Origin: Orbicella franksi
Taxonomy: Eukaryota
NCBI GenBank assembly: GCA_964199315.1
Contig: OZ116701.1
Coordinates: forward strand, 3,968,001 to 4,032,000
Length of the DNA: 64,000 bases
Direction: 5' to 3'
Positions 1 through 23,100 of the stretch are shown in pieces; within the stretch, counting starts at the first letter, position 1, and every line of letters begins with the position of its first letter. A program made the position numbers and the translations under genes. A model generated the notes under the pieces. The model saw nothing but the letters and a program-made list of their open reading frames with translations, made no database searches and was not told the DNA's origin.

Positions 1-1472
1 AAATGACTTACTATACACAACAAGTTCAGTGAGGAAATAAACGCACTCTGTTTAATATGGCTGAGAGTGGGAAACCGACAAGCGAGATAGTTTACAAATC
101 TGATTTTGCCATCAGTCTCCAAAACGAAATAGAGCTTTTCGTCTACCAATCTTGAGTTTAAAATATGTTTCTTCACACTTCAGTTACACAAATAAACAGT
201 AATTTGAGGTTCACTTAAAGAATGGCTTGATTTAGCTCGAAAGATCATTTCATGGGCACTTTATAAAATAGTAAATGAGTCAAGTTAAATGCTGTCTTAC
301 GGATAATAAAGGTTTAAAATTGACAGTGGAAGAGCAATGTGTTCGTCACGTAGAAAATAGCGGCAAGGTAGAACTGAATGAACTTTTCAATTCTCAAGAA
401 CTAGAAATCAACATACAATTTCTCCTAGCTGTCTTAGAACATTCTCAAAAAGTCAAGTGATGAGAATAAAGAAATAAAGCAACTGTATGAAATATTGTCT
501 TGATATCAAATCTGACAACATTGCCGAATTTTCTAGTACAAGTTTAGTCAGTGTATCCATGGATACCATTGTGATCTTTGCTGTTTTTAAGGTAGCTGAA
601 GTAGACGGATCTACAGTTCTTATTCATTTTAGCATAACACCTTGTTAACTTGACTTTCTGTAGGATGATAATAGAATCCTGGTTAACGGATTTTGTGATA
701 GAGTAGCACCCAAATATTGATGGCAACCTATCAAACCCAAAAGATACGAATAGCTTGTGTATGTGAAAAGAAATTAACGAAAGAAAACACTTGACATAGA
801 GATTTGAAATTTTGCGCTCATTCTTGTTAAACCAGTACAGTTGGTAAATTAGCATATAACGTCTCAGTGCGCGTATTTTCACTTGTCTAGATAGCCCTTA
901 CACTTGCCTTCTAGCTGATCAATAATGATAATTCTTGTCAACAGGATCACAGGATGGATCCGTTAAGAAAATGGGCTGCAGCACTTATCAATAAAAAATT
1001 CAACCACCTTAAAATAAAGTGTTAAGTGACTTTTTGGAAAACATTACTGAGTTTTTGAAAGCTATTTAATCAATAAACAAGACTTGCAAGGTAGCTTTCA
1101 TCAGCATTTTCTTCTCTGAAACAATGTGAATCAAAGTACAATACTTCAGTGAAATTTCGCAAAGCCTTTCCTAGTGTTAAGGAGGTGTAAGGGCTAATTA
1201 AAGGACTCACAAAAAAGAGCTCTTAAAACCTTCTACAACGTTAGATTATTACACAACGAAAAATATATATATATAAACAAGCCGCAAACTAAGTTTACGG
1301 CCAAATCTTGTGTCCTTGTCCATTACTTAAAAACTTAACCAAAGTGTGTTAATAAATAAAGATCTAAACCCCCCACCCCCAAATGATCGCAACATGTCAA
1401 TCTAGCATATCACAACATTATTGTGCGTAACATGTTGCGCGCGCTTGGTCACCCTCTTCAGACCTGTTCTGT

Positions 1473-2040
1473 CCTTCCTCCTCCCCAGAGGAGGTAGTAG
1501 GGAGCAAGATGACTCTTTTTCCCTCCTTCCTCCTCCCCAGAGGAGGTAGTAGGGAGCAAGATGACTCTTTTTCCCTCCTTCCTCCTCCCCAGAGGAGGTA
1601 GTAGGGAGCAAGATGACTCTTTTTCCCTCCTTCCTCCTCCCCAGAGGAGGTAGTAGGGAGCAAGATGACTCTTTTTCCCTCCTTCCTCCTCCCCAGAGGA
1701 GGTAGTAGGGAGCAAGATGACTCTTTTTCCCTCCTTCCTCCTCCCCAGAGGAGGTAGTAGGGAGCAAGATGACTCTTTTTCCCTCCTTCCTCCTCCCCAG
1801 AGGAGGTAGTAGGGAGCAAGATGACTCTTTTTCCCTCCTTCCTCCTCCCCAGAGGAGGTAGTAGGGAGCAAGATGACTCTTTTTCCCTCCTTCCTCCTCC
1901 CCAGAGGAGGTAGTAGGGAGCAAGATGACTCTTTTTCCCTCCTTCCTCCTCCCCAGAGGAGGTAGTAGGGAGCAAGATGACTCTTTTTCCCTCCTTCCTC
2001 CTCCCCAGAGGAGGTAGTAGGGAGCAAGATGACTCTTTCC
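1473..2040. repeat. 52-bp minisatellite, ~11 near-identical copies
   Basis: Unit CCTTCCTCCTCCCCAGAGGAGGTAGTAGGGAGCAAGATGACTCTTTTTCCCT recurs every 52 bp (1473, 1681, 1733, 1941). It explains the 52-aa periodic ORFs on the minus strand. Confidence 0.98.
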
Positions 2041-2156
2041 GTGGTTAATTTATTCATATATTCAATTAAGGTAATGACTCCAGAAATCGTAATAAACAAG
2101 GTGCAAATGCTTTTATTTTTAATATTGATTATCCTCTACGTTGCTTGGAAGTAGAA

Positions 2157-3036
2157 TTACTTTGCATTTAAATGTAGTTGAATCCAAGATACATTTTTAT
2201 TTCCAAAGCGGTGTGCAATGCCTTAAGAAAATCGTCAGTGAGAGATACCCCTACACTATATTTTGGGCACAGTGGTTTATCTTTTGGCCAAACATTCCCC
2301 ACTATCTTACCGGGGAATATTGTTCGAAGAACATTAATTTCTGTTCCTCAAACCTCCACTCCACTGACTGAAACAATCGCGCGTGAGGAATAAATTTCTT
2401 CCATAATCCTCTACTTTCCTAGGAAGGAGATTTGGAGGGAAGTGTACGTCTTAACCATAATCACTTAATCTTTCCTTAAAAGTGAAAAGTGGTTACATTT
2501 TGAGTAAAACTTCCTCTCAAAGTAATTTTCTTTAAGATGGTCAAGGTTTAGGAAATGGCTGAAAGACTAGACTGCTATATATGCCCATAGTGTCGACACA
2601 GAGTAGTTTAGTCTTACTGCTACTTCTTAACCTTTAACCCTCTCAGAGAAAAGTACTTTGGGAGGAAGTCTACCTCATATTACAACCCCTTTTTGAACTT
2701 TAAAGGACGAGTGGAGGATTATGGATGAGAGTTAAACTTCCTCTCCAAATATTCTCTCTAAGAAAGTAAAGGATTATGGAAGAGATTTAATCCTCCTTCG
2801 CGATTGTTTCATTCAGGGGAGTGGAGGTTTTAGGGGACAGGAATTAAGACCCTTCGAACAATCTTTCCCTGTAAGATGGTGGGGGATTTTTGGCCGAAGA
2901 TAAACTACTGTGCACAATGGCACGTGTAGGAATATCTCACGATTTTTTTATTATCTGACGATTTTTCCTGGCATTGCCCTCTGCTTTGGGAATGAGCAAT
3001 GTTCATTGGATTGAACTGAATTTAAATGCAAAGTAA
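2157..3036. repeat. 880-bp imperfect inverted repeat (fold-back), loop ~2577-2601
   Basis: Perfect 17-bp ends TTACTTTGCATTTAAAT (2157-2173) and ATTTAAATGCAAAGTAA (3020-3036). The arms stay alignable as reverse complements to the centre, e.g. 2268-2448 vs 2733-2912 and AGACTAGACTGCT vs AGTAGTTTAGTCT. Confidence 0.93.
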
Positions 3037-4660
3037 AGGACAACGAAACAGGTTTAACCGCACTCACCTTTCTGGTTCTGCGGCATATTTTTTCTACAGT
3101 TATTTTCTAAATAATATTTTACCACAGGAAGGTGCAAGAGCTTATTGGAGTCAAGTCTTTAATTTGCTCTTTGCAGCTTCCTTACATCAGCTAAGTTTAC
3201 TTTCTTTATTTGCGAAAATCTCTATCACTTTATTCTTCCCTCATACAGACTTGATATTATATATATTCACGTCCGCTTCATTTGTTAATCAACTATTCCA
3301 TGGTAACTTACTATGAGGATCGACAGATTTACGATAAACGGAGTACAGGTGCTTTTCTTAAAGTTTATTTCCAAGCTCAAAAACAATTTATTTGAAAGTG
3401 TTTCTGCATTTGTCTTTTAGCCAGTTGTTCGCTGTGGTGTATCCTTGTTCACTTTCTTTACTATTCCTCAGGCTACCTGTTGATCGAATCAAATATTAAC
3501 AGTTTGTCAGAATGTGTCACGCAGAATCAACATGTATTATTATGCGATGAACTGTCGGAGTGAGGGTGCTGCTGTGATACTCTCCTACTTGTTCTACATT
3601 TTCTCTCCAAATAAAACTTACGGTGCTTACATATATAATGAAATGTTCACAAGGTAACGCTACTTTTGGCTTCAGAAAAAAATAAACAAATACTAAGCAC
3701 AATAAACTAGTCGTTTAAATATAGAACTCTTACTAAATGATTGCCAATTAAATCTCTATACTTTAAGACGTCACCATAGTGTTATCGATAGCAGAATGAA
3801 CTGTCTTTTGAGTCCATCTTTCAGCTTGGCCCGAGCGATTATCAGTTTTTTTTCTAAAATTTCGGGTGCTGTAACAGCAAATGGCCTTGTTTCACTGAGC
3901 CCTCTGGAGAATTTGATTATCCATTCCATATTTCTAAATCCTCTTCCGAATCTTCGGTGAGACGAGAAAAAATGTCCCTATTTTGCAGACAATCTTCAAC
4001 CACTGAATAGTAATGGATGATCGTACAAAATATACCTTAGCCAATCAGAATGCAGTATTGCATTAGTATAATCCGGTAGATTTGTGCTAATGATAAACAG
4101 ATTGCTGTACCGTTGTCAAGCACAATAACTGTTGGTTATTAATTCTTACATAATGATCAAGAGTGATCACAATAAAACGTTTTCATGAAATCATTATGAA
4201 GACTAGTTGACTTTGTGAATTCTTTTGTTAGAAAACATTTTTGGACCTAGAAATTTTAAAGTTAAAATTGTAAATTCCATTTTCAAAGTTAAAACTTTAA
4301 CTTTGCAGCAACTATTTACTTCTGCTGGAATGTTGACACGACCTTGTTTCCTTACTTATGATCCACAACACGCTCTGCCTCGATCTGAACCAGTAGGGAA
4401 GAAATGACTTGCATTTAATGTCTTTTTTCAGGTTTTCTGAACTGCACTTAACAAATCTTAAGAAAGAAACTGACATATTCATTTCTACTTGTCTTATTCG
4501 CATCCTTGGATGGGCCTTGGCTTAATATTTCTCTGCAAACTGAAGTCGAGTGATACAAAACTTAAGCCCTGCTCCGCTGTGTTGATACTTGGTTGAATTA
4601 TCGCTTACAGAAAACAGCACCTCTTGTTACAGATGGTTTTCATGTTTTTGGTATCCTTAA

Positions 4661-7600
4661 GGGCGTGTTACACCTGAATTTGGTCAAAAAAATTGTATTT
4701 CAGCTGTTTGTATCTGGCCATGGATAATTTATTAAAGAAACAAATGCCGTTTATTCTGTGTCAATATCTAGCCCCGTTTTAAAGTTATATCGATTTTTCT
4801 CCGCTATGGTCAAATTTGAATTTGCCGCCATAATCAGTTACCATGGAAACAAGAAGTGTTTACACCATTAGACTGTAAAAAACTCGGGTACCAGAGGTTT
4901 AAAAACCGCTTCAATCGGTCCAAAAATAATTCTTAGGCAATAAATCGTCTAGGGAAACTGGGGACTAGTTAAAATGACCGAGAGTAAACTGGTGTTGAAC
5001 TATGAAAGTCAAGCACATGTTTTGAGTCGCCATATTGGATTTTGGCTCGTCTGTGAGGAGGATTCTAGCTTGTTCTATCGGTAACTTTCAACTATTTTTT
5101 ATCTGGACTTTAGTAATTTTAAAGATCTTAAATCGGTACTGAAATAAAGAAGTTTTCTAGCTGCCGAAAATGCCAAAAAAGTCTAAGAAACATCGTTTTC
5201 ACGGCACTCCGTTCTGGCGAAGAAAACAAGAGTTTCAGGAAAGTGCAAGCGAAGGCTCACAGCTTATGCCAGAGGTAAATGATCATCAAAGTGATCCAGG
5301 GGATCCAGATAACAGCCAGAGCGAGTCAGAATGCTCAAAAGAAACTGCATCAGAAAGAAAGCTGGGAACTGTTACACCTACTCGCACTGTGGAAGAGTAT
5401 TATGAGGAACCGGAGTCTTCAATCAGTTACCGCTTGGTTGAGCTCTCAAGTCTCATGAACACCTTTCAAGAGCTTCACAATTGTAAGAAAGGGAAGCTAG
5501 TCTTCAATGACGAGCAAGCAAAACGGTATGGAAACGCTTCGTTAATTCATATCGAGTGTACCAAATGTAAGAAGAAAGTGTATCTGCAGACATCAGCTAA
5601 TTGTGGTGGGAAATGGCAAGCCAAAAATGCATCCGACATAAATCGCCGCATGGTTTATTCTGCTTGTGAAATGGGTGTTGGACAGGAAGCCATTGCTGTT
5701 ATGTGTGATATTCTGAATATGCCACCACCTTGCCAGCTATCTTCTTGGAATGAACACACACAAGCATTGTATAAAGCACACAAAGATGCTGTTGAAGAAA
5801 AGCTTGCAAAAGCTAGAGAACATGTTCATGAACTTCACCGTAAGGAAAATCCAGATCTTACTGAAGATGATGTAATAGAAATTGCTGTTTCTTTTGATGG
5901 CACTTGGTCGAAACGAGGGTTTACGGCAAATTTTGGTGTCGGTTTTGTTATTTCTGTTGACTCTGGACAAGTGTTGGACTATGGTTTTGCATCAAAGATT
6001 TGTCGTCAGTGTTCACGTAAGAAGGAACAGGTTTCAGAGAATTCAGAGGAATTTAGAAACTGGTATGCAACTCACAGTTCAAATTGTACTGAAAATCATA
6101 CTGGATCCAGTGGAGCCATGGAGAAAGATATTGCAAGACGACTGTGGAGTGATTCTCTTGCATACAATCTGCGATACAAATACATGGTCTGTGATGGCGA
6201 CAGTAAGGTATACAACAGTGTATGGGATGTTTATGGGTGCTGTGAAGATTGTGATAAGTGGGAGCGAATGGACAAAAAGAGCAACCAATATAAGAAATGG
6301 GTCGACTCTGATGACCATAACAAATGGAAATCAGACCATGACCTTGGACACGCAAACTGTCCGTGAGTAATGAAACTTGACTGTATTGGTCATGTACAGA
6401 AAAGAGCGGGGACAGCTCTTCGTGAATTTCGAAAAAAGAATGCAGGGAAGTTGAAGGATGGACTGCCAGTTGGGGGAAGAAAACACAGGCTCACTGATAG
6501 CTGCATTGATAAACTCCAGAAACACTATGGGAATGCCATACGCAGAAATGTTATTTCTGGTGACATCAGTTCTGAGCAAGCAAAACGGCACATACAGAGC
6601 ATGCAAAATGACATTATGGCTGTGCTTTATCACAGTTGTAACATCAACAACAAGGAACGACACAAGTTTTGCCCTTCAGGGAAAGATTCATGGTGTGAAT
6701 ACAAAAGAACTGGGTCTTTTCAAAACAAAGACCACCATCTGGATCCAGTCTTTCTAGAGCTTCTTGAGCCAGTTTTCAAAAGGCTAAGTAGTGAGTCCCT
6801 TCTCCGCCGTTGTTTGCCAGGGTTCTCCCAGAACAATAATGAAAGCATAAACAGCTTAGTGTGGATGAGAGCCCCCAAGCATAAGTACCCACAAAGGGTT
6901 GAAATGGCAGCAATTGGTGCTGTTATCCAGTTCAATGAAGGAGCTTCTGGTAAGCAACTTGTAATGGAAAAGGCTGGGATCACATGGGGCAAACATGCCG
7001 AGAGTGGAAGTGCCCAGAAAAACAAGAAAAGGATCGACAGTGCAAAGCGGAAGTCATCCCAGCAGCACAAGAATGCCAGAAAGAAGATTAGGTTAGCAAA
7101 ACTGAGGGCAGAGGAGGAGAAAAAGTCAATTGAAAAAGCAACATATGGTGCAGGAAAGTTCAACAATGTTGACCCACTCCAGTTTTCCAGTAGCTCTGAC
7201 GACGACATGCCACTTGCCCAGCTGCAGTCAAAGAAAGCCAAGAAAAAATGACTTTTTTAGTGACATTGTGGTTTCCATTTGCTTGCCTTAACAAATGAAG
7301 TCATTTTGTGTAAATAAGTTGATGTGAAGTGGAGATTTAGACATAATTTGAACTCTCTGATCTTTAGCAATCATTTCCCGAAAAGTTCCTTTTTTGTGAC
7401 TAGTGAACTTAAAAATCTCATAACTTTAAAAGAACTCAATCAATTTGGCTGAAATTTTCAGCATTTATTGTTGACATGTAAAGAATCAAAATGATGATAG
7501 CATTTGAAGGAATAAGCCATAGTTTATGAGATATTGTTTCCAGAACTTAAAAGTATTATTTCCGTTCAGGTTTGGTTGCTATGACAACAGGAGTGATGAT

Positions 7601-7913
7601 AGCTCAAATTTCCTTCATGTTATAGCTTCACGCTTACACTATTGATTAAAAGTGTTCTCAGTACAATTTAGAAATGCATTTTTCATGAGATAGAATTTTG
7701 ATGTAATGTATTGGGTGTGGTCATTGTGAAAGTTAAATCACTCCAGGGGGCCCATATTGGTGGTAAAGGACAAAATTTTTACTTCAGTTTGTTGCTTAGT
7801 TCTTGCAGAACCAGAAAATGTATGGTTTTGCTTGGTTTAGCTCAGTCAGTTCTGAGATAATGAAACCTGAATCATTGGTACCCCAAATGTTGAAATTCAG
7901 GTGTAATACCCCC
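4661..7913 (+). mobile_element. Full-length Kolobok-type DNA transposon (3253 bp)
   Basis: TTAA TSD at 4657-4660 and 7914-7917. TIRs GGGCGTGTTACACCTGAATTT vs GGGGGTATTACACCTGAATTT (19/21). RR...YY termini with a TTAA target fit the Kolobok superfamily. Internal DDE transposase present. Confidence 0.88.
5170..7251 (+). pseudogene. DDE transposase interrupted by a single in-frame TGA (6364-6366); 693 aa if repaired
   Basis: ORFs 5170..6366 and 6370..7251 are in the same frame (CCG TGA GTA ATG). Motifs: FDGTWSKRG (D1), CDGDSK (D2), CIGHVQKR (CxxH), SQNNNES (E), plus Cys/His zinc-binding clusters. Confidence 0.88.
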
Positions 7914-7917
7914 TTAA

Positions 7918-8230
7918 AGGGACACAGTCGGCTTTGGGACCGCGCTGACCTGGACACCAGTTTCCTCACTTTGAAAAAGTTCACCTCAACCTGAAATCAA
8001 AGATACTCGTCGAGTACATCTAGAAACCCGCTTCAATCTTCGCAGTGTTTTGCTTGATTTTCAATCGTTTAGTGAAAAAACCTGCTTTTGAGTGGGCTTT
8101 TGCTCATCCTATGATAGTTTTTGTATCATATTTGGTTAAAAACAGTATGGATCGTGTCTCTGTGATATGCAAATTAACTATGAAATCAAATGGTATCTAA
8201 TGCGCATGTGCTCCAGCTGACTGTGTTCCT
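7918..8230. mobile_element. 313-bp TTAA-targeting non-autonomous element (Kolobok-like MITE)
   Basis: TIR AGGGACACAGTCGGC vs AGGAACACAGTCAGC (13/15). Flanked by TTAA at 7914-7917 and 8231-8234. Confidence 0.8.
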
Positions 8231-10049
8231 TTAACTTTTAATAGAGTACCACTCATTCATGCTTCAAAAGTATTGATATTATTGATAAAAGAACGTAAAA
8301 CCGAAAAATCAAAAACAAAGCCTCCGCAATCTTTTCAAGGCACTGGACGTTTTTATTTAAGCTTTTCGAAATGTACGAATTGATTATGTCGTTCTCAAAC
8401 CTTTTTATCAGCCTAGCGGTTTTGTCAGTAGTCCGACATCACCAAGTCCAATTACATCCTTTACAGGGACAGGATCCGGTACTTCTTTTTTTATTAGTTA
8501 ACGTCGGTCCTTGCAAATTGACCTTGTGTTTTCACTGCTTACCAAAGCGTCACTTATTTAACTATCAGAAACCATAGTACACTTGCCTGCCAAGGAGTTG
8601 AAAAACAAATATTGCTTCGGAAACAACATCAAAACTCGATCTGCTATTACCGACCACCTAAGAAATAGACTTACCAATGCGGGGTAAAAATACAGCCTTT
8701 ATCAGCAATGATGTGAAAAAATTTCCTGCTGCAAATTATTAACGACCTTTTAACATGTCCACGACTAAATTTCCTCACGGTTACGTGTTTGATTCTCGGT
8801 TCCAGTTTCTTACAGGTCATCGATACAATTTCAAGCATATCCTTCAGACAGTTGTATTTGTTCAAATCATAGTTAATAGAGGGAATGGTTAAGAAACATC
8901 AAAAAAGCAAACAAACAGGCTAAGAGTTATGTTGGAAGGTCTTTGACCCTGTGCATCTTTTTGTTTTATGCTCCTAGACTGTGCATGAATTACGTAATCG
9001 CGATGTTTCTATTGGTTAGTTGTATGAGCACACATAACCACTTTTTGGATTTTTCCAGATTTTGTGCAGGGTCAACCTCCCCCAGCGCCCCAAACAGCCA
9101 ACAAAAACATACAACAAAGAAATTTGCCATGATTCATAACCATTTCCCTTTATTAACTAGGTTCAAATGTATTGTGTTTAAGTACTTTCTTATTTCACTT
9201 TAATTATTGCCAATGCGTCTCGAAACAGGATTTAGGTCAATGCTCTTTCCAGTATCTTGATAAAGTGAAAACAATGGAAACTGACGCAGGTCAATATAAA
9301 TAACTAAACTTGGTAACTCCTTGTTAAAACAATCAGGGAACGTTTTGTTTTGTCAATTAGCTCATTGCTTTTTTTGACGTTCCTGTGGCAAACAAGCACG
9401 CTCAAAGGTGTTTTATGAATTTTGGTGTACTTTTCTAAGCTCAAGTCTATGAGATTTTCTTGGTCTTTACAAAGTCTTAAATAAAAAGAAAATATGAATC
9501 GCCATAGTTTTTAGTATTTTCAAACGTTTTGACATATTTGCAAAATTTTGAAATCCAAGATGGAGGTCCTTTTCAAAAGCACGATATCATTTTTACCTTA
9601 CAAGTTATTGCACGAAAATTAACATTCCTAGATGATTAATCACCACATACTGCATATATGTTTTATTACTATACCGCATTTATAATTTGATGAACATGGA
9701 AAGAGACACTCTCAGTTAATCTTCACCCTTTGCATGTTCTAAAATTTGTTTCATTTTTAAGAACTCCATATAAAAGATGAAAAGGATAGACGAATATGAT
9801 TAAAATTCAAAAGGTTTGTTCAAAAGTTCCAAAGCAAAAAATTAAACCTTAATGATAATTATGTCTTGAAACCTTTCCTCAGTAATACTGCTTGTAAATA
9901 CTTCTTGTAAAATCACGGTTCCCGCACTAAGTGAGACTAGTTTCTAACTTCTGATAATAACGTTTTTCAATGCAATAACTTTGTACTAATCTTCCCTATG
10001 TCGGATCGATGTGAAAATTATACACTGAGTTGCTAAAATGAGCTTAGAT

Positions 10050-11500
10050 CAGGAGCCATAATCGGGGACGGAGACCGTAAGCACGCGCCATTTCTAGTAT
10101 TGGGGCTGTCCCTATGATATGGGACAATTTTTCTATTTTTAGAACAAATTGCGCCATCGTGAGCGAAAAGCGCGCGTACATGCTGCGAGGATTTTTGCGG
10201 TTGTAGCGCGGGGGAAACGGCATCCGAAATTCCCGACATGAATTGTGCTTTTGGCCCACAACTCAATACGTTTATGCCTGTTGGAATTTTGCTAAAGTAT
10301 TTTCGTCGTAAGCTGCTCCAATTCGACTGAAGTAAGGCAGTGTCGAATTTAGGTACGTCCCGTTTTATATCACTCAGACCAAGTCGTGTTCCGCTGCTTC
10401 TTTTACACTGAAGAGTTCCACATTACTCCACTCTAAATTTCACATATGCTGAAGATTAACAGCTTTTCCGTAACACAACAAAAGACTAGTTGGAAAAATT
10501 TGGATATTGCAGCGTTCTAGGACTTCAAAGTTTCCCTCCTCTTGCCACACGCTTGCGGGGATTTCGCCAGAGTCTATCGCCACCGAAAAGTAGTAAAAAA
10601 TTGCAAGTTTGCATTTCGCCTGAATTGTAAGCAACACTTGATATTTCATCCAGGCCCAATAAGTTTACGTCTATAGATACGGTTAGGCTTTGTTTGTGTA
10701 AAAATTCGATAAATTGTCTGTTGTCGATGAATAAGAGCGCCCGCCGATGCGTGTTTTGTACAGTCAGTAAACATGACAAATTGGACTTCCGTAATAATAT
10801 CTCTAGTTTTTAAATATGTTCAAGGTTGATAAATGTTTGAGAACATATTAAACTGCTTAGCTGAAAATATGTGAATACAGCAGGAATAATCAGCAAAGTT
10901 ACGATGACGCTTTCTTTAATCAACTCGAATAACGATTTCGATTTTGTTGGCTGAGTTATCAAAACTCCTTGTCTATTTTATTTTCGCAGCTGTGTAAAAT
11001 TTCACTACGTTGAAGAAACACACATGAAAGTAGCCTTTTGGCGTGGGTGAAAATTGTTGCAGAATCTCAGCACAAGAGATAACGAAAGAACTCTTTGTCA
11101 AGATTTGTTGCCAATTAGCTACAATTGAAAACACCGACTCGGACTTTAAAGTGCACGCCCTGGAGCTACTTGTACGGGTCAGACTTTCCTTCCATAAATT
11201 TTTGCAAACTTGCCAAACGAGCAGAAATAATAAGAAACTATCAGAAACAGGTTTTGGTTATGGTTAAGCACTGTTTGAGAAATTCACAAATTACCTCGAT
11301 ACCAGAGTAGAGAGATTTCTTACATAAACTTTATTCTTTAGACAACATCCACGCGAGAACCCACGACATGTTCGTGGATTCGCGCGGATGTATGTCGTCA
11401 GGGTGGCGCAATTTGTTCTAAAAATAGCAAAAGTGCCCCATATCATTAGGTGCGCGCAGATCCCGAGACTTACGGTCTGCGTTCCCGGTTATGGCTCCTG
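10050..11500. mobile_element. 1451-bp non-autonomous TIR element with 7-bp TSD (P- or hAT-like)
   Basis: Exact direct repeat CTTAGAT at 10043-10049 and 11501-11507. CAGG...CCTG ends. Terminal 32 bp match 29/32. A second inverted block lies at 10111-10156 vs 11404-11450. Confidence 0.85.
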
Positions 11501-12899
11501 CTTAGATTGAAGATTGTTTATTTTTTACGGAAAACGACATTCCAAGGAAGCGGGAGACTGCGCGTGCAACAATTAACATACTATGCAAATTCAAAGCTTT
11601 CTAAAGTTTTCGATTCTATTTTATCTATTTTCCATTTCATTATTACATTTCATATGTGTAAACAGTAGTTTTGACACCTTTTGACCTGTGTACTTGTTTT
11701 ATTTATCTATTTTTCTCTGGGTCCATTTTTTTTGTGCTGTTTGTTATAAAATGTATCGACCATTACTTCAATTTATCATTTCAGCTACCTTGCGTCACAT
11801 ATTTATTCTAGCTGGAATGTTATTTGTTTGTTGTTTGCTTGAATACTGACACCAAAACTTTATTCACATGCAACAAACTGTTGTTTTCTTGAGAAAAAGA
11901 AAATACTCAAACTACACTTTGAAATCTATGTCAGTGAAACATCGCTACATCGAAAACATGACATTTCTCTCAAGGCTTGAGCCCACTTGTGCCCGGACAC
12001 ATGCAAGTACGTATCGAAACCAAACAACGCTCGTAAATATTTTCAGCCACCTGAAAAATTAATTTTGTTTTCTGTGTTCTAAACGTTAATTTTCCATATT
12101 AAATGGTGTAGCAAGACACTAATTTGCCCTAGGCGATGACATTTTTTCATTCACCTCCATGTTTAACACTGTACTTATATCAGTTACACAGAAGAAAAAG
12201 TAGTGCATGTTTATATAGATTTTGGTCAAGCTTCAAACATTGATGACCAAAAAATGATCGTGTTTACCAAAGCGCAATTAGAATTGTCATGCCGATAAAG
12301 TCATAAGCTCTATCAGTCGTTATAAATTAAGTTGCTGTTCGTTCTTGAATGCCTGACAATACTATTTTAAAACACATTTGATTTTGAGCAATTCCTTCTC
12401 TAAATGAATCGCCTTTAAAGTTCATTTGCGGCCTCGTATAAGGAAAGCATTGTTCGCACTGCAAATTATCATTGTATTATTAAACTGGAATTGTTCTCGT
12501 AAGTTGTCGTACATGGTTCTCTGTCTGCAGCATAAGTGGATCACTTCGTTAAATCTTCGTTCGCAAAGCCAAGCCGAGAGTAAGTTGAAATGCTACTTTA
12601 GAATCTTTGTTTTTCACAATGTTTATATCAAAATAAATTTGTAACAATTACTAGTACCACCACCACGTTTTTATTCTGTTAAATTTGAATTCAAAATGTC
12701 AGTAAAAAGCACTTCAATTTTTCATTGCGGAGAATATTCGGCCATTTCAAGTTGTCCTTTAATATAATAAATTGCGATGTTCAACCTTTCACTTCAGTCT
12801 CAAACTCAAAATAGTAATTTTCCCAATTGATTATCACACATTTCTTTTGTTCTTAGTTTGTGAATTTGGTAACATTGCCTTTGTAACATACTTGACAAC

Positions 12900-15310
12900 G
12901 CAACAAGGTACGATGAGGTTATATTTTGATCACTCTTGGACTGAATCCGTTAATGGTAAACGACTAGAGAAACAAGAAAACGACTTATCTGAAGTAAGAT
13001 ATTTCCAGGCCTGGGTCCAAAAGCCAGTACACTGCAATCCAAAATGACTACATATTTCTTTGAAAGGGCATTTAACCTAGAAAGAAAGGAAACATCAACA
13101 AAATAACTGGTTAATATTGATTGTATCACTTAACACTTACTGTTTTCACAATGTTCTTACGAAAGTTATAATAATTAACACCAGCATGTTGTTTTATTCT
13201 GTTAACTTTGATTCCATTATGTCACTGGACAAGTCTCCAATCCTCAAGTAAAATTCCTCTTACTAGTTACAATATATCCTGATTCTAATATTTTCTCTCT
13301 AACTGAGATACTTATAACAAGGGTCAGGAAGGCATTTATATGGTCAGACTCTGATCACTCTTTGGACTGAAACCGTTCAATGGTAAACAGAGAAGAAAAC
13401 GACTTACCTGAAAAAAAGGTGTTTTCAATGGCTGTCAACTTGACCCAGGCTTCGAGACCTTACACACTTTGATCCAGCATGGCTACACTTTCTACTGAAA
13501 CGATGCTTGCATTCAACCTGGTGATAAAAAGAGCAAAAAACGACAAATGAAATTACTTTTCAACGATTATCGGATCTCCAGTTGTGTTAATTTCGAATAT
13601 TTGCCCGTAAATACACATTTACAGTGCTTTTCTAAAGCATTACTTTATTGAAATTGATGAACAAATCTCTCGCAATCGTGTTACTTTTAAGAATTCGTTC
13701 GGAAGTCAGAACAATTCCTCGTTGCCCAACCGGTATCTAAGAGTTTATGGGTTCGAATCCCGTCACGGACTGAGATGTTCAATTCTTTGTCCCAAGCTCA
13801 CCACAGGATCAAAATTTCATCTTTCACTAAACAAATTCGAGACGTGTTTATAAATTTAATAACAGACAATTCTGCAGTGACTTCTTAAAGCAGGTATCAA
13901 TACTGTATGGTAAAACTATTTAAGAAAACACTAAATTTTTTTTGGCCGGCAAATCTCAAACAAACTTCCTGGTTCTGCCGAGGACATTAAAATAGTTAAA
14001 GATTTTCTCTGCAAGATACTTTGAAATGTATTGACATGGAAGGAGATTTTATTAACTTTGGACTGAAACCGAAAACAAAGGAAAATTTGAGGTGCCGGAC
14101 TTATTGTAGAGAAAAAGCGTTTCCAGCCATTAGCAAGCAGTGAACTACTGATTGAAACCACTGAGTCCAAGAGCTAACGAAGTTGCTTTTCTTGCATTGG
14201 CAAATTTTCAGTCTTTCGTTTCATAAATTTTCCAGAAACCAAGTGAAGCAAGTTGCAGATAAATTTCTAACACCGCCAAAAAATATTTTATGAACGTTAC
14301 TGCTTAGCTTTGGTGGTACATTTAGACAACATTTCTCAGTTAATGAATAGAAAACTGCGAAGATAATATCTGGTCTATCTGAACCAAGATGTTTGCAATA
14401 CTTACTTTGTACCAAAGAACATTAGAGCCACGCATTGTCGTACAAAATGGATTTGTTTTCTCTCAGCATATCTTTTACAAAACCTGCATGAAAAAGAAAA
14501 GAGGAAGCTTTGATATACTGACTTTTAAAAATTGCGTTAGGCTTAGGAATTTGGTCAAAACAATGCAGAGCTAGCGGTTCACAGAGACATTTAAAGCATA
14601 AATGCTATTCAGGCAGCGTTTGAACGCACAGAGCAGTATAAAATTATTATTATTTTTTTTGCTACATGAAGACAGTTTATTTGGTTATTTCCCTCAGGAT
14701 GTACTCAACATGATAAAAGAAAATCAATTATTTTCTTTCTTGGACTGATACTGTAAATGGTAGAAGACAGAAGAGTTAAGAAAATGACAACGAGCTTATC
14801 TGACTATAAAATCTTTCAGATGTCGTCTGCTTGCATCGAAGCGAAGGGTAAAACACTACAATCCAAAATGGCTGCATTTTCTTTCAATGCACGTGCACTC
14901 TGTGTTCAACCTTGGAAAAAAGAGAGCAAATGTTAATAAATAAAGTAAATCTCCTTTTATTCAATAGAACAGTCTTGTAGTTGTACAATCATGATGTCGC
15001 TATTTTCAGGCATATTACATTGTATTCGCTAGCCTGAAATCAAGAGACTAGAGAAATGCATTTTATAGTGGTGGCTGGCTTTCTTTTCGCTTAGAGAATT
15101 TACTGAGAACAAACGTGTTAGGTCTGGGATTCTGGTGGTATATTGTATTTCGATCAATCTTGCTCTGAATTAAATCGTTTACCAGGAAAACGACGAACAA
15201 ATGACAAAACTACGATGTACTTATCTGAAATCAGTCATTTCCTGTGGTCAACTACCAGGTTGCGCTAGAGCCCAAGAACTACAATCTGCAATCCAAAAAG
15301 GCTTCTGTTA
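12900..15310. repeat. Four dispersed degenerate ~200-bp direct repeats (~12900-13100, 13315-13550, 14730-14935, 15140-15310)
   Basis: Shared ordered motifs: GATCACTCTTGGACTGAA, AATGGTAAAC, ACTTATCTGA, CAATCCAAAATG(G/A)CT and AACCTGG..AAAAGAGCAAA. Confidence 0.7.
13725..13830 (+). mobile_element. tRNA-derived SINE fragment
   Basis: Pol III B-box GGTTCGAATCCC near 13750 with no intact cloverleaf. Confidence 0.55.
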
Positions 15311-18015
15311 CATTTTAATATAAATTACCATACACTAGAACAAAAAAATCATAAAATTGTAGCAAGGGTCAAACTGAGCCATAGCAATCAATTTATCGTG
15401 ATAGCTATCTTAGTCAGAATTTTTAAATCAGACTTTATAACAAGGTCAGATCATACTTGTAAAATAAAGATAAAAACCTAGAATTTGCCTGAAATTGGAG
15501 TTGATCGCAATATGAAGAGACTGATGAGGAAAGAACGGAGCTTCAAAGCTGAACACGGCTGCTCATAATGGTTACATTTCCTTTGGGTTCCCCTCTGTTC
15601 GTCTAATGCCAGAAGGAGAGAGGAAACTGTCAAAAATATATCACCTTTGAGTTTGAGGTGTTATCAGTCGGTCAATCAGTTTGGTAGTTAGAAACCGGCC
15701 ATATAACATCGGACAATATCGCCTGCATTAGCAAATTTCTTAATGTTCTCTTAGGATTATTTTCTCGCCAGAATTCAACGCACGTTTCAGTTGCTCAAAA
15801 TTGGTTCCATTCGTCAAGTAATTTCTGATTTCACGAAAATGTGAGCAATTATGAAAACATGACGATAAATGAACAAAAGCCACAATGCAATTATAACTCA
15901 AATCTGCCTTTACGTCTGAAATTCTAACCAAATATTTTGATATTACTTACCCGAAAATGTATCAGAAATCAATCGTGTGGCAAAGGACGGTACAAGGATG
16001 GCTGTGTAGCATCTCAACAAAGTCGCTCTCAAAGTAAAACCGACTAAATTAAACTCCAATTAAAACATTCACGAGCAGTAAGTTCAGCAATTGTATGGAA
16101 ACAAACTGTTCCTGCATGAGAAAAGAATTTAAATTCTCAGGGAATATTATTGACGTAACTTTAAAACTGTTGACATTAAGTCAGTCAGATCTTCATACCC
16201 TTTGCAACTCAGAGCATCGGAGCAATGGACAAAAAACCGGGTCTAAAACACAAGTCACATTCCACACGTCAAGAGTAGAAATCCTTACTCTACTGATGAA
16301 TAACTATGCCAAAAGTTCCCCCTCGATCTAAAACAACATTTTCGCAGAGTGCTAGGGCTAATTAGGGTTAGGAGACTGAATTTTGGTGCTGTTTAGTTAT
16401 CTGTAGCACAGTGACTCTGTACTCTGACCTGTGGAATGTGACCGGTAGTTCAGACCCGCCGTGGACAACATTAAACAGGTACAAATACGACGAACAAGAG
16501 AGCTAGTATTTCTGAAATGTGGTATTCAGTAAGAAACTTTCAAACCTGCTATTCCGATGTATTTGTCTAAACGAACTTGGTAATTCTTTATTCCGAAAGT
16601 TTCACACCCTCCCAGTATTCAACAATTTCTTCACTGTGTGGACGTAAAAAATTGCTTAACGAACTGGTTATACTAAACCACTAAACTGCGGAAAAGGGCA
16701 AGCGTAGCGAAACGAGGCGAAAAGCGAACAAGGTCATGAAATGAAAAAACCAAAGCGTATACTTATCTGCGAAGGGGAGCACATCGACGAAGATACTGGT
16801 TCACCTTCACAACACACGACGCTTTCTGACGCTAAAATGAACGGAATGTCCTTTGAGACTTCCTTACATACACGATTAAAATTCATTCCACCCACTAGAA
16901 AAGTGTTTGCCGCATCAGAATATTTCATTGAGATTTCTGTGCGTCAAACAATAGAGCAGACAATGATAGTCAATAAAAAAATATCGAATAAAGCACGCAC
17001 TCAGTAGCCAGTTATTTTCTTCTAAAAAAGTACAGGTATTTCAAATGAAATTCGTTGAATAGTTTTCAAGAAGTTGACTCTTGAAGTCCTTTGTGATATC
17101 ACTTAAAACCCCAAGGAAAGACTGAATATGTGTCTTCGGGAGCTTTAAATTCATCGCCGCGTTTTAAATGCACAACGTGTCTTATTCTCAGTTGTGTTGG
17201 CATTTTACAGAGCCAAGCCCTGAAAACTAAAGGTGTCAGGTGTTTACCATGATAGGCACGGAAGGCGTGCTCGGACTATTCGGTGACAACACTGGGACTG
17301 TAAAATTGTGTAAAAGCAAAAAATATAAACATATCAAAAATAATTCTGATAAATGTATTTAACATCAATTCTGTCTTGAATTCCAAACATGATTTGTTAC
17401 CCACAATGCAAGGTTTTGAGTTAGGGACAAAACTAGAGGTCCGGAACAATGCTTTTCTCTGACTTTCCCTTGATAAAAATGAAATTTCTCTAACCAAATA
17501 AACAGCAGACATAACTAGTAACGGTTTCTAGCCTGCCCTCAGGGGCAGCCCTCCTTTCCACCCATTCATTATGACTGACAAGTTTTTAACAAATCCTTTT
17601 TCATAGGGAAAATGTCTTTTTCCTGACCATTTCCTGACCTTTAGCAGGGTGTCTAAAAAAACTCGAATAGCGAATGGTGGTGAACAGTCACGGATAGTGG
17701 CGAATAGTCGTCAATAGTCACCGCTTTAGTTCAGCACTGGTCTGGGTTCGTTGAAACTGATCACGTGAAAAAACAAACAAACAAAAGAAACAGTAAAATA
17801 GTGCTCTGTGATTAGTTTATCAACTGAAAAGACACAAACGACCTGCTCTGATAACCGGTTATAAAAATAATAACATCTAAGCTACATCTTGCGTTAATTA
17901 ATTATCCAAACAAGCATGAGAATTTCAGTGAATTTATTACCTCTTCTTCTCAGGACTTAGGCTAGGGCTGACACCAAGAAAACAGAAAACACAAGGATAA
18001 CCTAATAGGTCTCTG

Positions 18016-18610
18016 TGAAGGTGGATGAAGGTGTATGAAGGCCTATAAAGGTGGATGAAGGTGAATGAAGGTCTATCAAGGTGGATGAAGGTCTATGAAG
18101 GAGGATGAAGGTAAATGAAGGTAAATGACGGTCAATGAAGGTCTATGAAGATGGATGAAGGTGTATGAAGGTGAATGAAGGTGTATGAAGGTGTGCGAAG
18201 GTCTATGAAGGTGTATGAAGGTGACTGAAGGTGAATGAAGGTGAATGAAGGTGAATGAAGGTGAATGAAGGTGTATGAAGGTGAATGACGGTGAATGAAG
18301 GTGGATGACGGTGAATGAAGGTGTATCAAGGTGTACGAAGTTCTAGGAAGGTGCATGAAGGTGGTGAAGGTGAATGAGGGTGTATGAAGGTGTATGAGGG
18401 TGGATGAAGGTGGATGAAGGTGTACGAAGGTGTATGAAGGTGAATTAAGGTGGATGAAGGTGGATGAAGGCGAATTAAGGTGCATGTAAGGTGTATGAAG
18501 GTGAATTAAAGTGTATGAAGGTCGATAAAGGTGTACGAATGTGAATGAAGATCTATGAACGTGTATATCAGTGAATGAAGGTGTATGGACGAACATGAAA
18601 GGTGGTGAAA
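18016..18610. repeat. 10-bp minisatellite (TGAAGGTG[A/T/G]A)n, ~60 variant copies
   Basis: Direct reading of GAAGGTGAAT, GAAGGTGTAT and GAAGGTGGAT units. Confidence 0.97.
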
Positions 18611-18611
18611 G

Positions 18612-19031
18612 TATAGGAGAATCTTTGTTTACAATATTTGCCTCATTACCATAAGCGATACAGTTTCTGATGGAGCTACAAAGAGATTAATACTGAATAT
18701 TGAAAGGGCACAGCACGATTAACTGTCCCAAGGAATTTGAGCGCGATGTATTGAATACTTTTTGTGCGACGAGGGTTTAAAAGCTCAAAATTTTACAAAG
18801 AATGTATGAGCTCATTAGCGCTTTTGCCACACAGAAATTTTGATGTTTTTGAAACCCAATTTCTCCTCGAATATTACACCCAAAGAACCAAAAATTTCAC
18901 CACTTACTAAGTTTCACAAGCTCTTTAAGTTTTTCTAGTAAAATCGTGTCTAGCATGATGCCTTCTATGCGCAAAGTCGTATGTTAATGAGGAAAAATGT
19001 AAACAATGACGTCAGCAAAGATTCGCCTATA
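18612..19031. mobile_element. ~420-bp MITE, possible TA target site
   Basis: TATAGGAGAATCTTTG at the left end, CAAAGATTCGCCTATA at the right end. Subterminal TGTTTACA..TTT.CCTCATTA is also inverted. Confidence 0.65.
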
Positions 19032-20150
19032 TGATGTAAGCAATTATGTCAGCATATACAGGTTTGGTCAGCGGTTTATTATCAAAAGGCTCGGAGCCAT
19101 TCCTGCCATTAACTTCATGTGATCCGTATTTTGTCTCTCATTAGCTGTTATTAATTACTTTCGCGCGAAATGTTTTCGCGTCGAATCAGATTTCTCCCTC
19201 TCGCAAGAAGGAATGAGTGAGAGTGATAACATAACAATAAATGATTTTTTCTTTACTTTTTTAACTTCGTTCTTTTATTCAGTGGAATTAGATTCATTAT
19301 TTTGAGCTCAAAATTTACAAAAGTTAAATTACGTCAAATTTTTGCTTTCTGTTCTTAGTTAAAACTGAGCCATAACGCACATGAACGTCAATAGGCTACA
19401 CAACTGATTGACAGTTATTGATTCACTCATTTATTGTAAAGGTTTATTTAATAATTGTCGCCTAAAGGAATCATTTTACAGTGTACGTTCTCAATATATC
19501 TTATCCGTCATTGGAAATTAATTAAATATTTTTCATTTAAAGAAATCATCTCGGTTCCTTCCATGTAGTAACTCCATCGTAGAAGATATATCTAGAGTAA
19601 GCTGTTCCAACAACCACTACATTGCATTCAAAGAAAATTGAATACACTGTTAGACTCAAAAGTAACAAAAAAATGGACTGTAATGAGTACGTTAAGCTGG
19701 AAAACAAAGGTTTGTGCAACATCGACTCTAACAGGTAAATGAAATAATGATAGCTTATTACTACATTCTTTTATTCTGATTTTCTTTTGTAAAAGAGCAA
19801 AGGACACTTAACTTGTTCCATAAACTGGAAGAGTCGTATCATGTGGATTTATATTAACCACTAGCTTAGTTATCAAATATATTTCAATGTCTCTTGAAGG
19901 TGAAGTTTTCTTTCAGTTTAAATCCAGACTAAACGAGATTTCAGCTAGATTATGAACTGTTGCCAGCTCTCTTCTCTTACAGTCGACAATTTCGCACGCG
20001 CTATCTTCTCCACCCTGTACGTGCGAGAAACTTAACTCGCTCCAAGAACTGTTCCACTTTGGTTTCAGTGACGCCTGTGTAAGGCATTGTTTTTACTCCA
20101 TCTGAGAATCATCAGCCTTTTGTCCAGTGATAACGTTGTGTGCCGAGCAC

Positions 20151-23100
20151 TCACAGCTTGGACAGATGCGAGGAGAACAGCGACGAATTGGACGGCAAGT
20201 CAAGAAATTCTCCTGAGGAAGATTAAACAAGAACATCATTTTAGTTTGACAAGACTATAGGTTTATTATTATCATCACTTCAAATTCTTTATCGAATTCA
20301 CTTTGTTTTGCAAGGACAGCATTCAAGAAAATTAATTTGTTGCTCACCTATTTTCTGGCAGGTTTCAACAGCCTTCGCGCCGCTTGGAACTGAGATTAAA
20401 ACAGCGCCATCAACACTACGAAAGATCACAGTTAAAACCGTTTAGACTGTAACATTTTAACGTAAATAAAGCTTGGAGCTTGGCACGATCAGACATAGTG
20501 GAAATTAAGTAACCACGATGGCGACGCCAAAGACAACGTCGATAAAAACCTGACTTAAAATTTTACTTACAAGTCAAAGCGATATTCTATAGTCATTCAT
20601 AACTTTGTTTATCACTGTTTTTGTTCATGTCGAAACTGAATCTGAAACACAAGTTATATTAGTCGTTGTGGTTCACATTCTCCAGACAACGCAGAATTTG
20701 GTCATTTCACGTTGTTATTTTGCAAAGGACGGCAAAGAAATGCACCAAGAATTATAACGCACGTGCACAGCCTCTGTACTGCTCAAAAACCCTTTTGTTC
20801 AACGACGTTCCCATGCCGTTACCGTTGTGGTTCATTTAAACTCCTTGTTGATGAACAAGAGCCGAGAAATTTAGTATGCACCGGGAACCGCGCGGTTTTA
20901 CCTTTTAGATGCTTTGAGGACTCGCAATTCGACCAAAGCCATAACAGAATTCCTTAACAAGTCGAGTGAGAGGACTTCATAGAACTTGACATCTCCTGAA
21001 GAAAACAACATGCACACAAACTGTTTTAAACAGTGACAGAAAACCAGTAAAAAGTGCATTTTGATTGTGATAATATATAGTAAGAATAAAAGCGATAGTT
21101 TCTTTCTGTGGTTCAATTTTGTAGAACATCACTTGACAGATGGCGAGAGCTAATTTAAACAGATTATAGATTGAAAATTATAGATGACAGATAGATTATT
21201 ACATGTGAATAGAACTACCCATTTTATCTTGTTTTCATTTACGCCGGCTAAAAACAAGATAATGATGCTATAGTGGAGGAGAGGGGGTTAGGGGAGTGCG
21301 ATGAGAGAATAGACAAAGTATGACCATAAAGTAATTTTTTTTAATTTGGCAGATTGGTCATCACATTCCTTCGGTTCATAGAACACATTTTCTAACCCCG
21401 AGGATATGTTCCCAAACATTGTGCCTACGGTTGTCTCGAGGGTGTTAGTGAGCCTCGCTTACCAGTAAGGACAAGTTCTGCTGCACTGTCCTGAGTTTGC
21501 CTTACAATCTCAGTCAGCGGTCTTTCGTGGTTACCATCAGGATAATTGACAAAGAACTGGGACGTAATCTAAAAAAAGCAAATTAAAAAGCCTTCAAAAC
21601 TACTCAACATAATTAATAGGGAGTTTTAAGTAATGACGACGGCGACCCCGAGGACAACGCCGAGTAAAAAATGAATTTATATTTTACCTTCGAATTTCGC
21701 AATTGTCTAGATCTGTTCAGTGCGCCTATCAGTCTCAGAACTTGCTCAAGCTAAATATGTAACACCAGCGTTCAATTGCAAATGAAAATAACGCACGTGC
21801 ACAGCCATTACTCTACTCATTGGTGACGCTCTCGTTGTGGTTTGCTGAAGTGCTCTATCACTTTGAGTAAACAAATTGTGGGGAATGAAATAACATAGTT
21901 TTGTCACGTGTATTTGGTCGGACAGCTCCATATGAACTGAGAAGTCTCTCTTATGTTACTCACCCAGTATGCTGTCAAAATTGGTCTCCACATGTTAGCG
22001 CTAAAGCTCACATCTTTGTCCTGAAGTATCGCAACTTTGCCATTGCGAACACTTATCGAGCCGTGCTCCTCTAGTAACTGAGTTGTCTCCCGAAAGTATT
22101 CAAAAGTCTGAAAAAAAGAAGAAAAACGAAAAAAGGCTTGAGTTATTGGCAAGCTGGAGTAGAGGCGTTCGAGCTCTTGCCAAATACCAAAGCATCGTCG
22201 GTCGTAACGAGTGATACTTTTTCAAAATTAAATTTTCCGTTGTACAAAGTGATTTTGTACTCAGCCTTTATATTCCTTAAGCATAATATGCGGGCTGTTG
22301 ACAAGACAGCTTCTCTCAATCTTGTCTCGCAATGCATGTGGTGCAGTCCTGTGTCAATGTGGGAACATTTCTCAGGACTGTTTCACGGAAACGCTACAGT
22401 GTTCATCAAGTTTTATAAAGCAAGTTGCACGAGATTGCATAGTGTGGCATGAATTAAGTAAATTGTGATGATAACCTCATTAGTTCTTTCCGTGACTTGA
22501 GGAACTTCTTTCACCAGCAGCTTGGCCAGGAACTGAAAGTCAGCGAACAATTGAACTAACGAGGAGAGGAAGAAAACAAAGTCAACAACGATGTTGCTTT
22601 TGGGCCTCGTCCACGCTACGCCGGAAAGATTTGATAACGGTGTTTTCACTCTGAAAACGCATCAAATCTTTTCACATGTCCACATAACGCCGGGGAATTT
22701 AAAAACGCAACAATCACCCGTCATTTTGGATTTGTGTTTGAGGAAAACTCGGGCAGGGAAATTTAATTAATCACATGATTATTGTGACGTTATCGCTTTC
22801 GATAAGCTCCGTTCTTCAAATCTTTTCCGTCCACACTAAACCGCAAAGCAAGCGTTTTCAAATCCCTCCGGCTTGAAGAGCGTTTTTTTCCAAAGCTCCA
22901 TTCACGTGACGGATTAGTGTGGACGGTAGACCCAAACGTAGAAATAAAGCTGCGTTTTCAAATTTCTCCGGCCTGGTGTAGACGGGGCCTCGGAATTCAA
23001 CAGTACTAACGTATATAGGACAGAAAATTGTCAACAAACCCAAATGTTTTTCGGAAGAAGGTTGCTTGTGTGCTGCTAGGGAAAACATTCCAATTCTGAA

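Follow-up and report, generated by a model that had tools for sequence, protein, structure and literature searches.

A rod-like 880-nt inverted repeat, probably a passive passenger of a large non-coding repeat unit in the coral Orbicella franksi

The hairpin, its host unit and neighbouring elements

The window analysed here (a stretch of 64,000 nt from the coral Orbicella franksi, contig OZ116701.1, referred to as chromosome C4 below, positions 3,968,001 to 4,032,000) contains an imperfect inverted repeat of 880 nt at 2157–3036, which was delimited by repeat search, RNAfold, and arm alignment and to which no strand is assigned. It is composed of a left arm (about 2157–2576), an apical loop of about 28 nt (about 2577–2604), and a right arm (about 2605–3036), and the repeat search tiled it completely with four arm pairs (I1–I4) of 73–85 % complementarity. 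In RNAfold, the plus strand of 2157–3036 adopts one continuous rod of −462.8 kcal/mol, as compared to −215 ± 5 kcal/mol for shuffled sequences (z −49), and the minus strand likewise forms a single rod of −421.1 kcal/mol (z −28 vs. shuffles), the plus-strand fold being the more stable one by 42–50 kcal/mol. The termini match perfectly over 17 bp, with G vs. T at the next position, and a TA dinucleotide is located directly inside both ends. The palindrome does not extend beyond 2157 and 3036, where the pairing score of flank against flank stays at null level. A rod-like hairpin with these borders, with ends perfect over 17 bp and a loop of about 25 nt, had been read from the sequence in the original prediction, and repeat search, folding of both strands against shuffles, and inspection of the termini bore out each of these features, the loop being slightly longer as measured here.

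Both arms show further internal structure. A tandem sub-repeat of about 55 nt occupies 2401–2487 of the left arm (plus strand; D4 and I5 of the repeat search), with CCATAATC at 2401 and again at 2455, and is mirrored in the right arm at about 2710–2797, where GATTATGG is found at 2717 and 2772, in agreement with the octamer pair that had been noted twice per arm. The motif AAACTTCCTCTC(A/C)AA, thought to occur in both orientations, is indeed present on the plus strand at 2507 and 2734, but the copies in reverse orientation, near 2431 and 2655, are more degenerate and require more than two mismatches. Similarly, the branched fold that was suggested to compete with the rod is possible on paper, but the MFE and the centroid structure are both rods. 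The similarity between outer and inner arm halves does not exceed the null level, and no direct repeats of about 270 nt from which the arms could be built were detected. Immediately to the left of the hairpin, a stretch of 28 nt (2128–2155) resembles 2403–2430 of the left arm (local score of 18 vs. a shuffled maximum of 15), which hints at a shared origin of this flank segment and part of the left arm.

The hairpin is a module at a fixed place in a large, essentially non-coding repeat unit, which measures at least 15 kb (a young transposon excluded, see below) and extends from a point left of the window start to about 18,000; all coordinates of its parts refer to the plus strand. The left part (1–1471) is 85–91 % identical to about 40 collinear places, and the unit continues leftward from there. 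It is followed by 10.9 perfect copies of a 52-bp satellite (1472–2038), by a spacer of 118 nt that is conserved among copies (2039–2156), and by the hairpin. This order is fixed, in that every copy has the satellite, at variable length, on the left side of the hairpin. In sister copies, the satellite arrays are longer (>1 kb) and 96–98 % alike, and the six-frame ORFs across the satellite are repeat artefacts. To the right of the hairpin, 3037–4656 is 93–96 % identical among about 40 copies, has low polyA RNA coverage, and contains no coding exon.

The rest of the unit (7921–18007) is also non-coding, and the copies stop at about 17911 or about 18007. Probes covering 7921–9920 and 11000–13000 returned the same collinear places with 91–95 % and 91–96 % identity, respectively, and a probe from 16400 to about 17911–18007 did so as well. 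At the right border of the unit, there is a degenerate 10-bp minisatellite, (TGAAGGTGTA)n, with about 57 units (17954–18587) that only a few copies share; a few extend through it to about 18620. Since the probe 19000–21000 had no match at the unit places, this region lies outside the unit. In the part of the unit inside the window, no ORF exceeds 91 aa and none of 9 small ORFs gave a Pfam hit; neither terminal inverted repeats of the unit itself nor target duplications were found, its left end being located outside the window. A segment of 1.3 kb within the unit (10114–11446) is enclosed by 49-nt inverted repeats of 90 % complementarity and may, judging from this architecture, represent a nested non-autonomous transposon. 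The minisatellite harbours an ORF of 154 aa (18132–18596, minus strand) with no Pfam hit.

The unit copy in the window is interrupted by a young DNA transposon (4657–7920, plus strand), which shows a target duplication of TTAA and the inverted termini GGGCG...CCCCC. Its transposase domain, of the Mutator-like type (PF20700), is distributed over two ORFs (5170–6366 and 6370–7251), and the transposon has a 99 % identical copy on chromosome C6 (14739890–14743162). Because other copies of the unit join 4656 almost directly to 7921, the transposon is a young insertion private to this copy and not part of the unit. In line with this, RNA reads from sister copies have a loose end at 4640 that corresponds to the uninterrupted site of the insertion. 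The loose ends of RNA reads at 3136, 3485, 4287, and 4640 were also considered as exon borders, but appear to be sister-copy differences. Outside the unit, a dispersed repeat of about 350 nt (about 20496–20855) has dozens of matches with 74–79 % identity on many chromosomes and, with a core of about 190 nt at 85–91 % identity, is SINE- or MITE-like. Further to the right, von Willebrand factor A domains (PF00092, E about 6e-25) are encoded by ORFs at 47287–48063 and 54068–54712.

Copies, age and divergence of the hairpin

The hairpin and its unit are present in about 55–60 copies in the 497-Mb coral assembly. At all 40 scored places (59 first-look candidates), the hairpin was matched in full length with 90–94 % identity, 38 of these matches spanning hairpin positions 1–880 and the other two beginning at 67 or ending at 794. 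The two flanks (left ...GGAAGGAGAAT, right AGGACAACGACACAG...) are common to all 29 of the other loci that were fetched, and homology among the fetched loci reaches the locus edges on both sides. The shared position in the unit is thereby established by fetched sequence for 30 copies and by coordinates for the remaining genomic ones. That every examined copy has identical flanks follows from the hairpin being one module of the unit of at least 15 kb.

Independent mobility was addressed with the terminal 16-mer of the hairpin, which has 74 exact hits in the genome, nearly all of them paired ends within unit copies, from which the family size of about 55–60 derives, and 6 of them solitary. An exact pattern search of the genome for an empty site, in which the left and right flanks are joined with a gap of 0–12 nt, gave no hit, and no independent family with the hairpin arms or termini was found. 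None of these searches thus indicated that the hairpin had dispersed on its own and produced target-site duplications in doing so. Of the three candidates in the original prediction, the aged foldback-type element is the nearest, with sharp ends and perfect termini in its favour, but it does not hold with respect to dispersal, as the same flanks surround every copy examined. An arrangement of two head-to-head copies of a dispersed repeat of about 430 bp was considered as well and rejected, because the genome search revealed no other relatives of about 430 bp although it detected the opposite arm, which is 73 % identical, at every locus.

A tree of 30 hairpins comprises ten singletons (including the copy in the window) that radiate in a star-like manner with terminal branches of 3–4 %, one clade that corresponds to an array on chromosome C10, and a well-supported clade of 16 copies with terminal branches of at most 1 % that are located on C1, C4, C6, and C7. 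Within the latter clade, the nearest relatives of a copy in a local array are other copies of that array. Altogether, copies of the unit occur on chromosomes C1, C2, C3, C4, C6, C7, C9, and C10, in all cases in the outer chromosome parts. The local arrays have periods of about 30–43 kb (C1 and C7), about 52–59 kb (C10 and C6), or about 105–120 kb (C9), and one pair of units on C6 is inverted at a distance of 36 kb (26660575, minus strand, and 26696855, plus strand). This distribution combines a spread between chromosomes, which may reflect transposition of a giant element or ectopic duplication, with local tandem duplication. A large non-coding unit that combines a recent interchromosomal burst with distal arrays bears on the growth of coral genomes and on assembly quality in these regions.

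In the 30-copy consensus, the two arms are joined by 333 Watson–Crick and 37 G·U pairs, opposed by 16 A·C and 45 transversion mismatches as well as 21 gap columns, which amounts to an arm complementarity of 77 % (i. e., 23 % divergence). As the copies are about 95 % alike and the arms only 77 % complementary, most of the mismatches are common to the copies and arose before the amplification. The pairwise identity among copies is 94.9 % for the hairpin, 91.6 % for the 100 nt to its left, and 96.3 % for the 100 nt to its right, so that conservation of the hairpin falls between its flanks and not above them. Among 299 changes between copies at paired sites, 88 preserve the pair, and the change rate per site is 0.42 for paired and 0.50 for unpaired positions. 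Young transitions fit the plus-strand fold in 69 and the minus-strand fold in 64 cases, and a recount of polymorphic sites without ancestral state gave 87 exchanges between Watson–Crick and G·U as compared to 79 between Watson–Crick and A·C (p=0.59). Compensatory signal among the copies is absent, given that RNAalifold on the 30-copy alignment returned −315.24 (−316.11 + 0.87) with an unsupportive covariation term of +0.87 and that 3 of 313 pairs in this alignment have changed on both sides. By these measures, the hairpin has been drifting neutrally since the unit began multiplying.

Variability in the left arm is about double that in the right arm. Along the hairpin, diversity (π) among copies declines from 0.09–0.11 in the outer 150 columns of the left arm to 0.03–0.04 beyond column 350, a gradient that parallels the flanks, of which the left is more diverged (85–91 %) and the right less so (93–96 %). 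The two sides of the unit therefore seem, as far as these alignments tell, to differ in history or mutation rate.

The arm differences are nonetheless not symmetrical with respect to strand. The consensus has 37 G·U (wobble on the plus strand) vs. 16 A·C (wobble on the minus strand) positions (p=0.0055), and the imbalance is stronger for differences that are shared by at least 90 % of the copies (29 vs. 8, p=0.00075). It is this old excess that results in the better folding of the plus strand by 42–50 kcal/mol. The mild plus-strand bias that had been proposed is hence real for the old differences, but it is absent in the young changes. A simple regional mutation asymmetry is unsupported as its cause, since the unit has no consistent G+T skew, (G+T)/(A+C) ranging from 0.89 to 1.07 in the flanks. 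On the branch that leads to the young subfamily, 18 of the 22 fixed changes are located in the left arm, and eight are C>T changes, including three CC>TT doublets, all of which convert C-G to U·G on the plus strand. The three doublets lie within 20 nt of one another at alignment columns 247–265 (window about 2402–2420, left arm). The p-values for the bias are binomial and assume independent events; with C>T events clustered in this way, they are too optimistic. Probably, the G·U excess is the footprint of a strand-coordinated C-to-T mutation process that acted mostly on the left arm, for which no selection on an RNA fold is needed, and a trace of past selection on the plus-strand fold is the minority reading. 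An old strand-specific wobble bias without current constraint cautions against taking G·U asymmetry alone as evidence of a functional RNA.

Origin of the hairpin and spread of the unit

Taken together, the hairpin is quite likely an old, decayed inverted repeat that became fixed within a large non-coding unit, is passively carried by it, and drifts neutrally. As a starting point, we infer that the ancestral unit would have received a foldback-type or long-TIR non-autonomous DNA transposon at a TA site. The arms would then have diverged by about 23 %, with an excess of C>T on the plus strand, before amplification set in. Subsequently, the unit would have multiplied to its present number of about 55–60 copies, with the hairpin being copied passively at each unit duplication. 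Any effect that the hairpin exerts today would presumably be incidental, for example, by way of dsRNA from read-through transcripts or as a local obstacle to replication. A striking rod-like fold thus seems to have turned out to be the passenger of a bigger repeat, which recommends checking the context of all copies before an RNA gene is called.

With regard to the first of these steps, the sharp ends together with the perfect 17-bp termini favour insertion, which we consider somewhat the better supported origin. The TA 'target duplication' comprises only 2 bp and is located inside the palindrome, and a transposon origin is for this reason inferred rather than directly read from the sequence. 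Resemblance to foldback and long-TIR non-autonomous transposons (such as the FB-like elements of Drosophila and long MITEs) is considerable: a single inverted repeat with a short loop makes up the entire element, the ends are sharp with matching termini and TA on both sides, coding capacity is lacking, and each arm has a short tandem sub-repeat. On the other hand, the hairpin differs from these elements in that its roughly 55–60 copies were made via a larger unit and never have different flanks, that its arms have diverged by 23 %, that there is no convincing target-site duplication, and that neither an autonomous partner nor a sister family was found. It also departs from FB elements in the strict sense, the arms of which are arrays of tandem sub-repeats, by having one duplication of about 55 nt per arm.

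Alternatively, the hairpin may never have been a transposon and instead have arisen in the ancestor of the unit when about 430 bp of the unit's own sequence were duplicated locally in inverted orientation by replication template switching, followed by decay. Neither an independent family that shares the arms or termini nor an empty site was found in the genome, as would suit such an event, and the similarity of the 28-nt left-flank stretch to a segment of the left arm points in the same direction. However, an extinct transposon family would likewise leave no other copies, and the sharp boundaries, the terminal 17 bp that are perfect despite an arm complementarity of 77 %, and the TA at either end argue against a local duplication, which we therefore regard as a possible but less likely start. 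Both origins are compatible with the passive carriage of the hairpin by the unit as outlined above.

A different view places function in the unit, which would be a giant mobile element with the rod serving as a cis-element of a single-stranded DNA or RNA intermediate, that is, as an origin or as a packaging or priming hairpin. Such an element could account for the transposon-like dynamics of the subfamilies (an old star radiation followed by a young burst on four chromosomes), for the fixed position of the hairpin beside the satellite in every copy, and for the strand-specific wobble bias; G·T is the most tolerated mismatch in DNA hairpins. Yet, the 15 kb seen have no protein-coding capacity, the unit (the left end of which is outside the window) revealed no TIRs or target duplications, young copies freely gain changes that break pairs, and the distal location and arrays of differing period fit segmental duplication equally well, all of which makes a role of this kind very doubtful. 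The unit is reminiscent of interchromosomal duplicons or macro-tandem repeats in being at least 15 kb long, non-coding, located distally on at least eight chromosomes, and organized in local arrays. It differs from them by its subfamily of at most 1 % divergence on four chromosomes, which resembles a mobile-element burst more than it does slow ectopic exchange.

RNA evidence and possible RNA roles

In each of fourteen RNA runs, which stem from at least five studies, 22–26 % of the sampled words of 2040–4656 were present, a share that is expected for sister copies of about 95 % identity. In four runs, reads were placed at a threshold of at least 90 % identity. The first polyA run contributed 10 reads, all of which fall within 3184–3535. 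In the second one (203 reads), depth is zero on 2128–2479 (left arm), 0.3–6.5 on 2480–2831 (loop and right arm), and 5–25 on the right flank, where both mate orientations are represented. All but one of the reads are less than 99 % alike and accordingly come from other copies or another individual. Two metatranscriptome assemblies gave even cover throughout with contigs of up to 29 kb, which may be due to DNA carry-over. Back-joints, strand-change joints, or splice joints around the hairpin were not observed in the four RNA runs, the coverage of the hairpin being very low; strong hairpins are under-represented in polyA RNA-seq. Hence, the right flank of the family is transcribed at a low level, and the long-RNA libraries provide no positive evidence of a hairpin precursor, which amounts to a weak negative result.

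These data bear directly on the proposal that the hairpin is a working endo-siRNA precursor, in which the plus strand would be transcribed, the rod diced, and small RNAs supplied by about 55 copies. hpRNA endo-siRNA loci are described in Drosophila, and the hairpin shares with them an imperfect duplex of several hundred bp with G·U wobbles that favour one strand. In addition, hairpin-RNA loci have been reported in non-bilaterian animals (PMC6211395). The very stable fold, better on the plus strand by 42–50 kcal/mol, and the old G·U excess on this strand would suit a precursor, as would the presence of the family sequence in RNA libraries of several studies and the weak transcription of the right flank, and a dip in coverage over the hairpin is also what dicing would produce. 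However, structural constraint is absent since amplification, the hairpin is conserved no better than its flanks, polyA reads are absent from the left arm and limited to very few pairs on the right arm, the even metatranscriptome cover may be carried-over DNA, and no target gene is known. In contrast to hpRNA loci, the hairpin shows neither covariation nor conservation, has almost no long-RNA coverage, and is multi-copy within a repeat unit instead of being a unique regulated locus. Without covariation, extra conservation, or more than very few polyA reads on the hairpin, the precursor role put forward in the original prediction has become highly unlikely. If it were nevertheless true that about 55 hairpins yield small RNAs, they would constitute a multi-copy hpRNA family in a cnidarian.

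Both functional ideas can be combined into a more speculative one, according to which the unit would be an undescribed giant non-autonomous coral element whose plus-strand intermediate or transcript folds as a rod, the G·U excess would be a remnant of selection, and the copies would feed the siRNA pathway; we give this scenario little credence. Finally, a viroid-like rod RNA copied into the genome had also been among the candidates. This reading, like a retrozyme-type origin, has only the rod-like fold in its favour and can practically be dismissed. At E≤1, neither hammerhead, HDV-like, and twister ribozymes nor those of any other type were detected. The hairpin lacks head-to-tail tandem repetition, its sequence is normal genomic DNA present in many copies, its site within the unit (at least 15 kb) is fixed, and the reads contain no back-splice or strand-change joints.

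The underlying Rfam search (1400–3800, both strands) returned neither a ribozyme nor any other family at E≤1 apart from sub-threshold miRNA-hairpin hits and satellite noise. Among the former, MIR1435 aligned to the apical 166 nt of the hairpin (2507–2672) with 51.9 bits (E 2e-6). In this respect, the apical part is comparable to MIR1435 and to MITE-derived plant miRNA hairpins, with which it aligns as a long hairpin. Given that the score is far below the gathering score of 94 and that MIR1435 is a plant family, the match reflects a generic hairpin shape and not homology.
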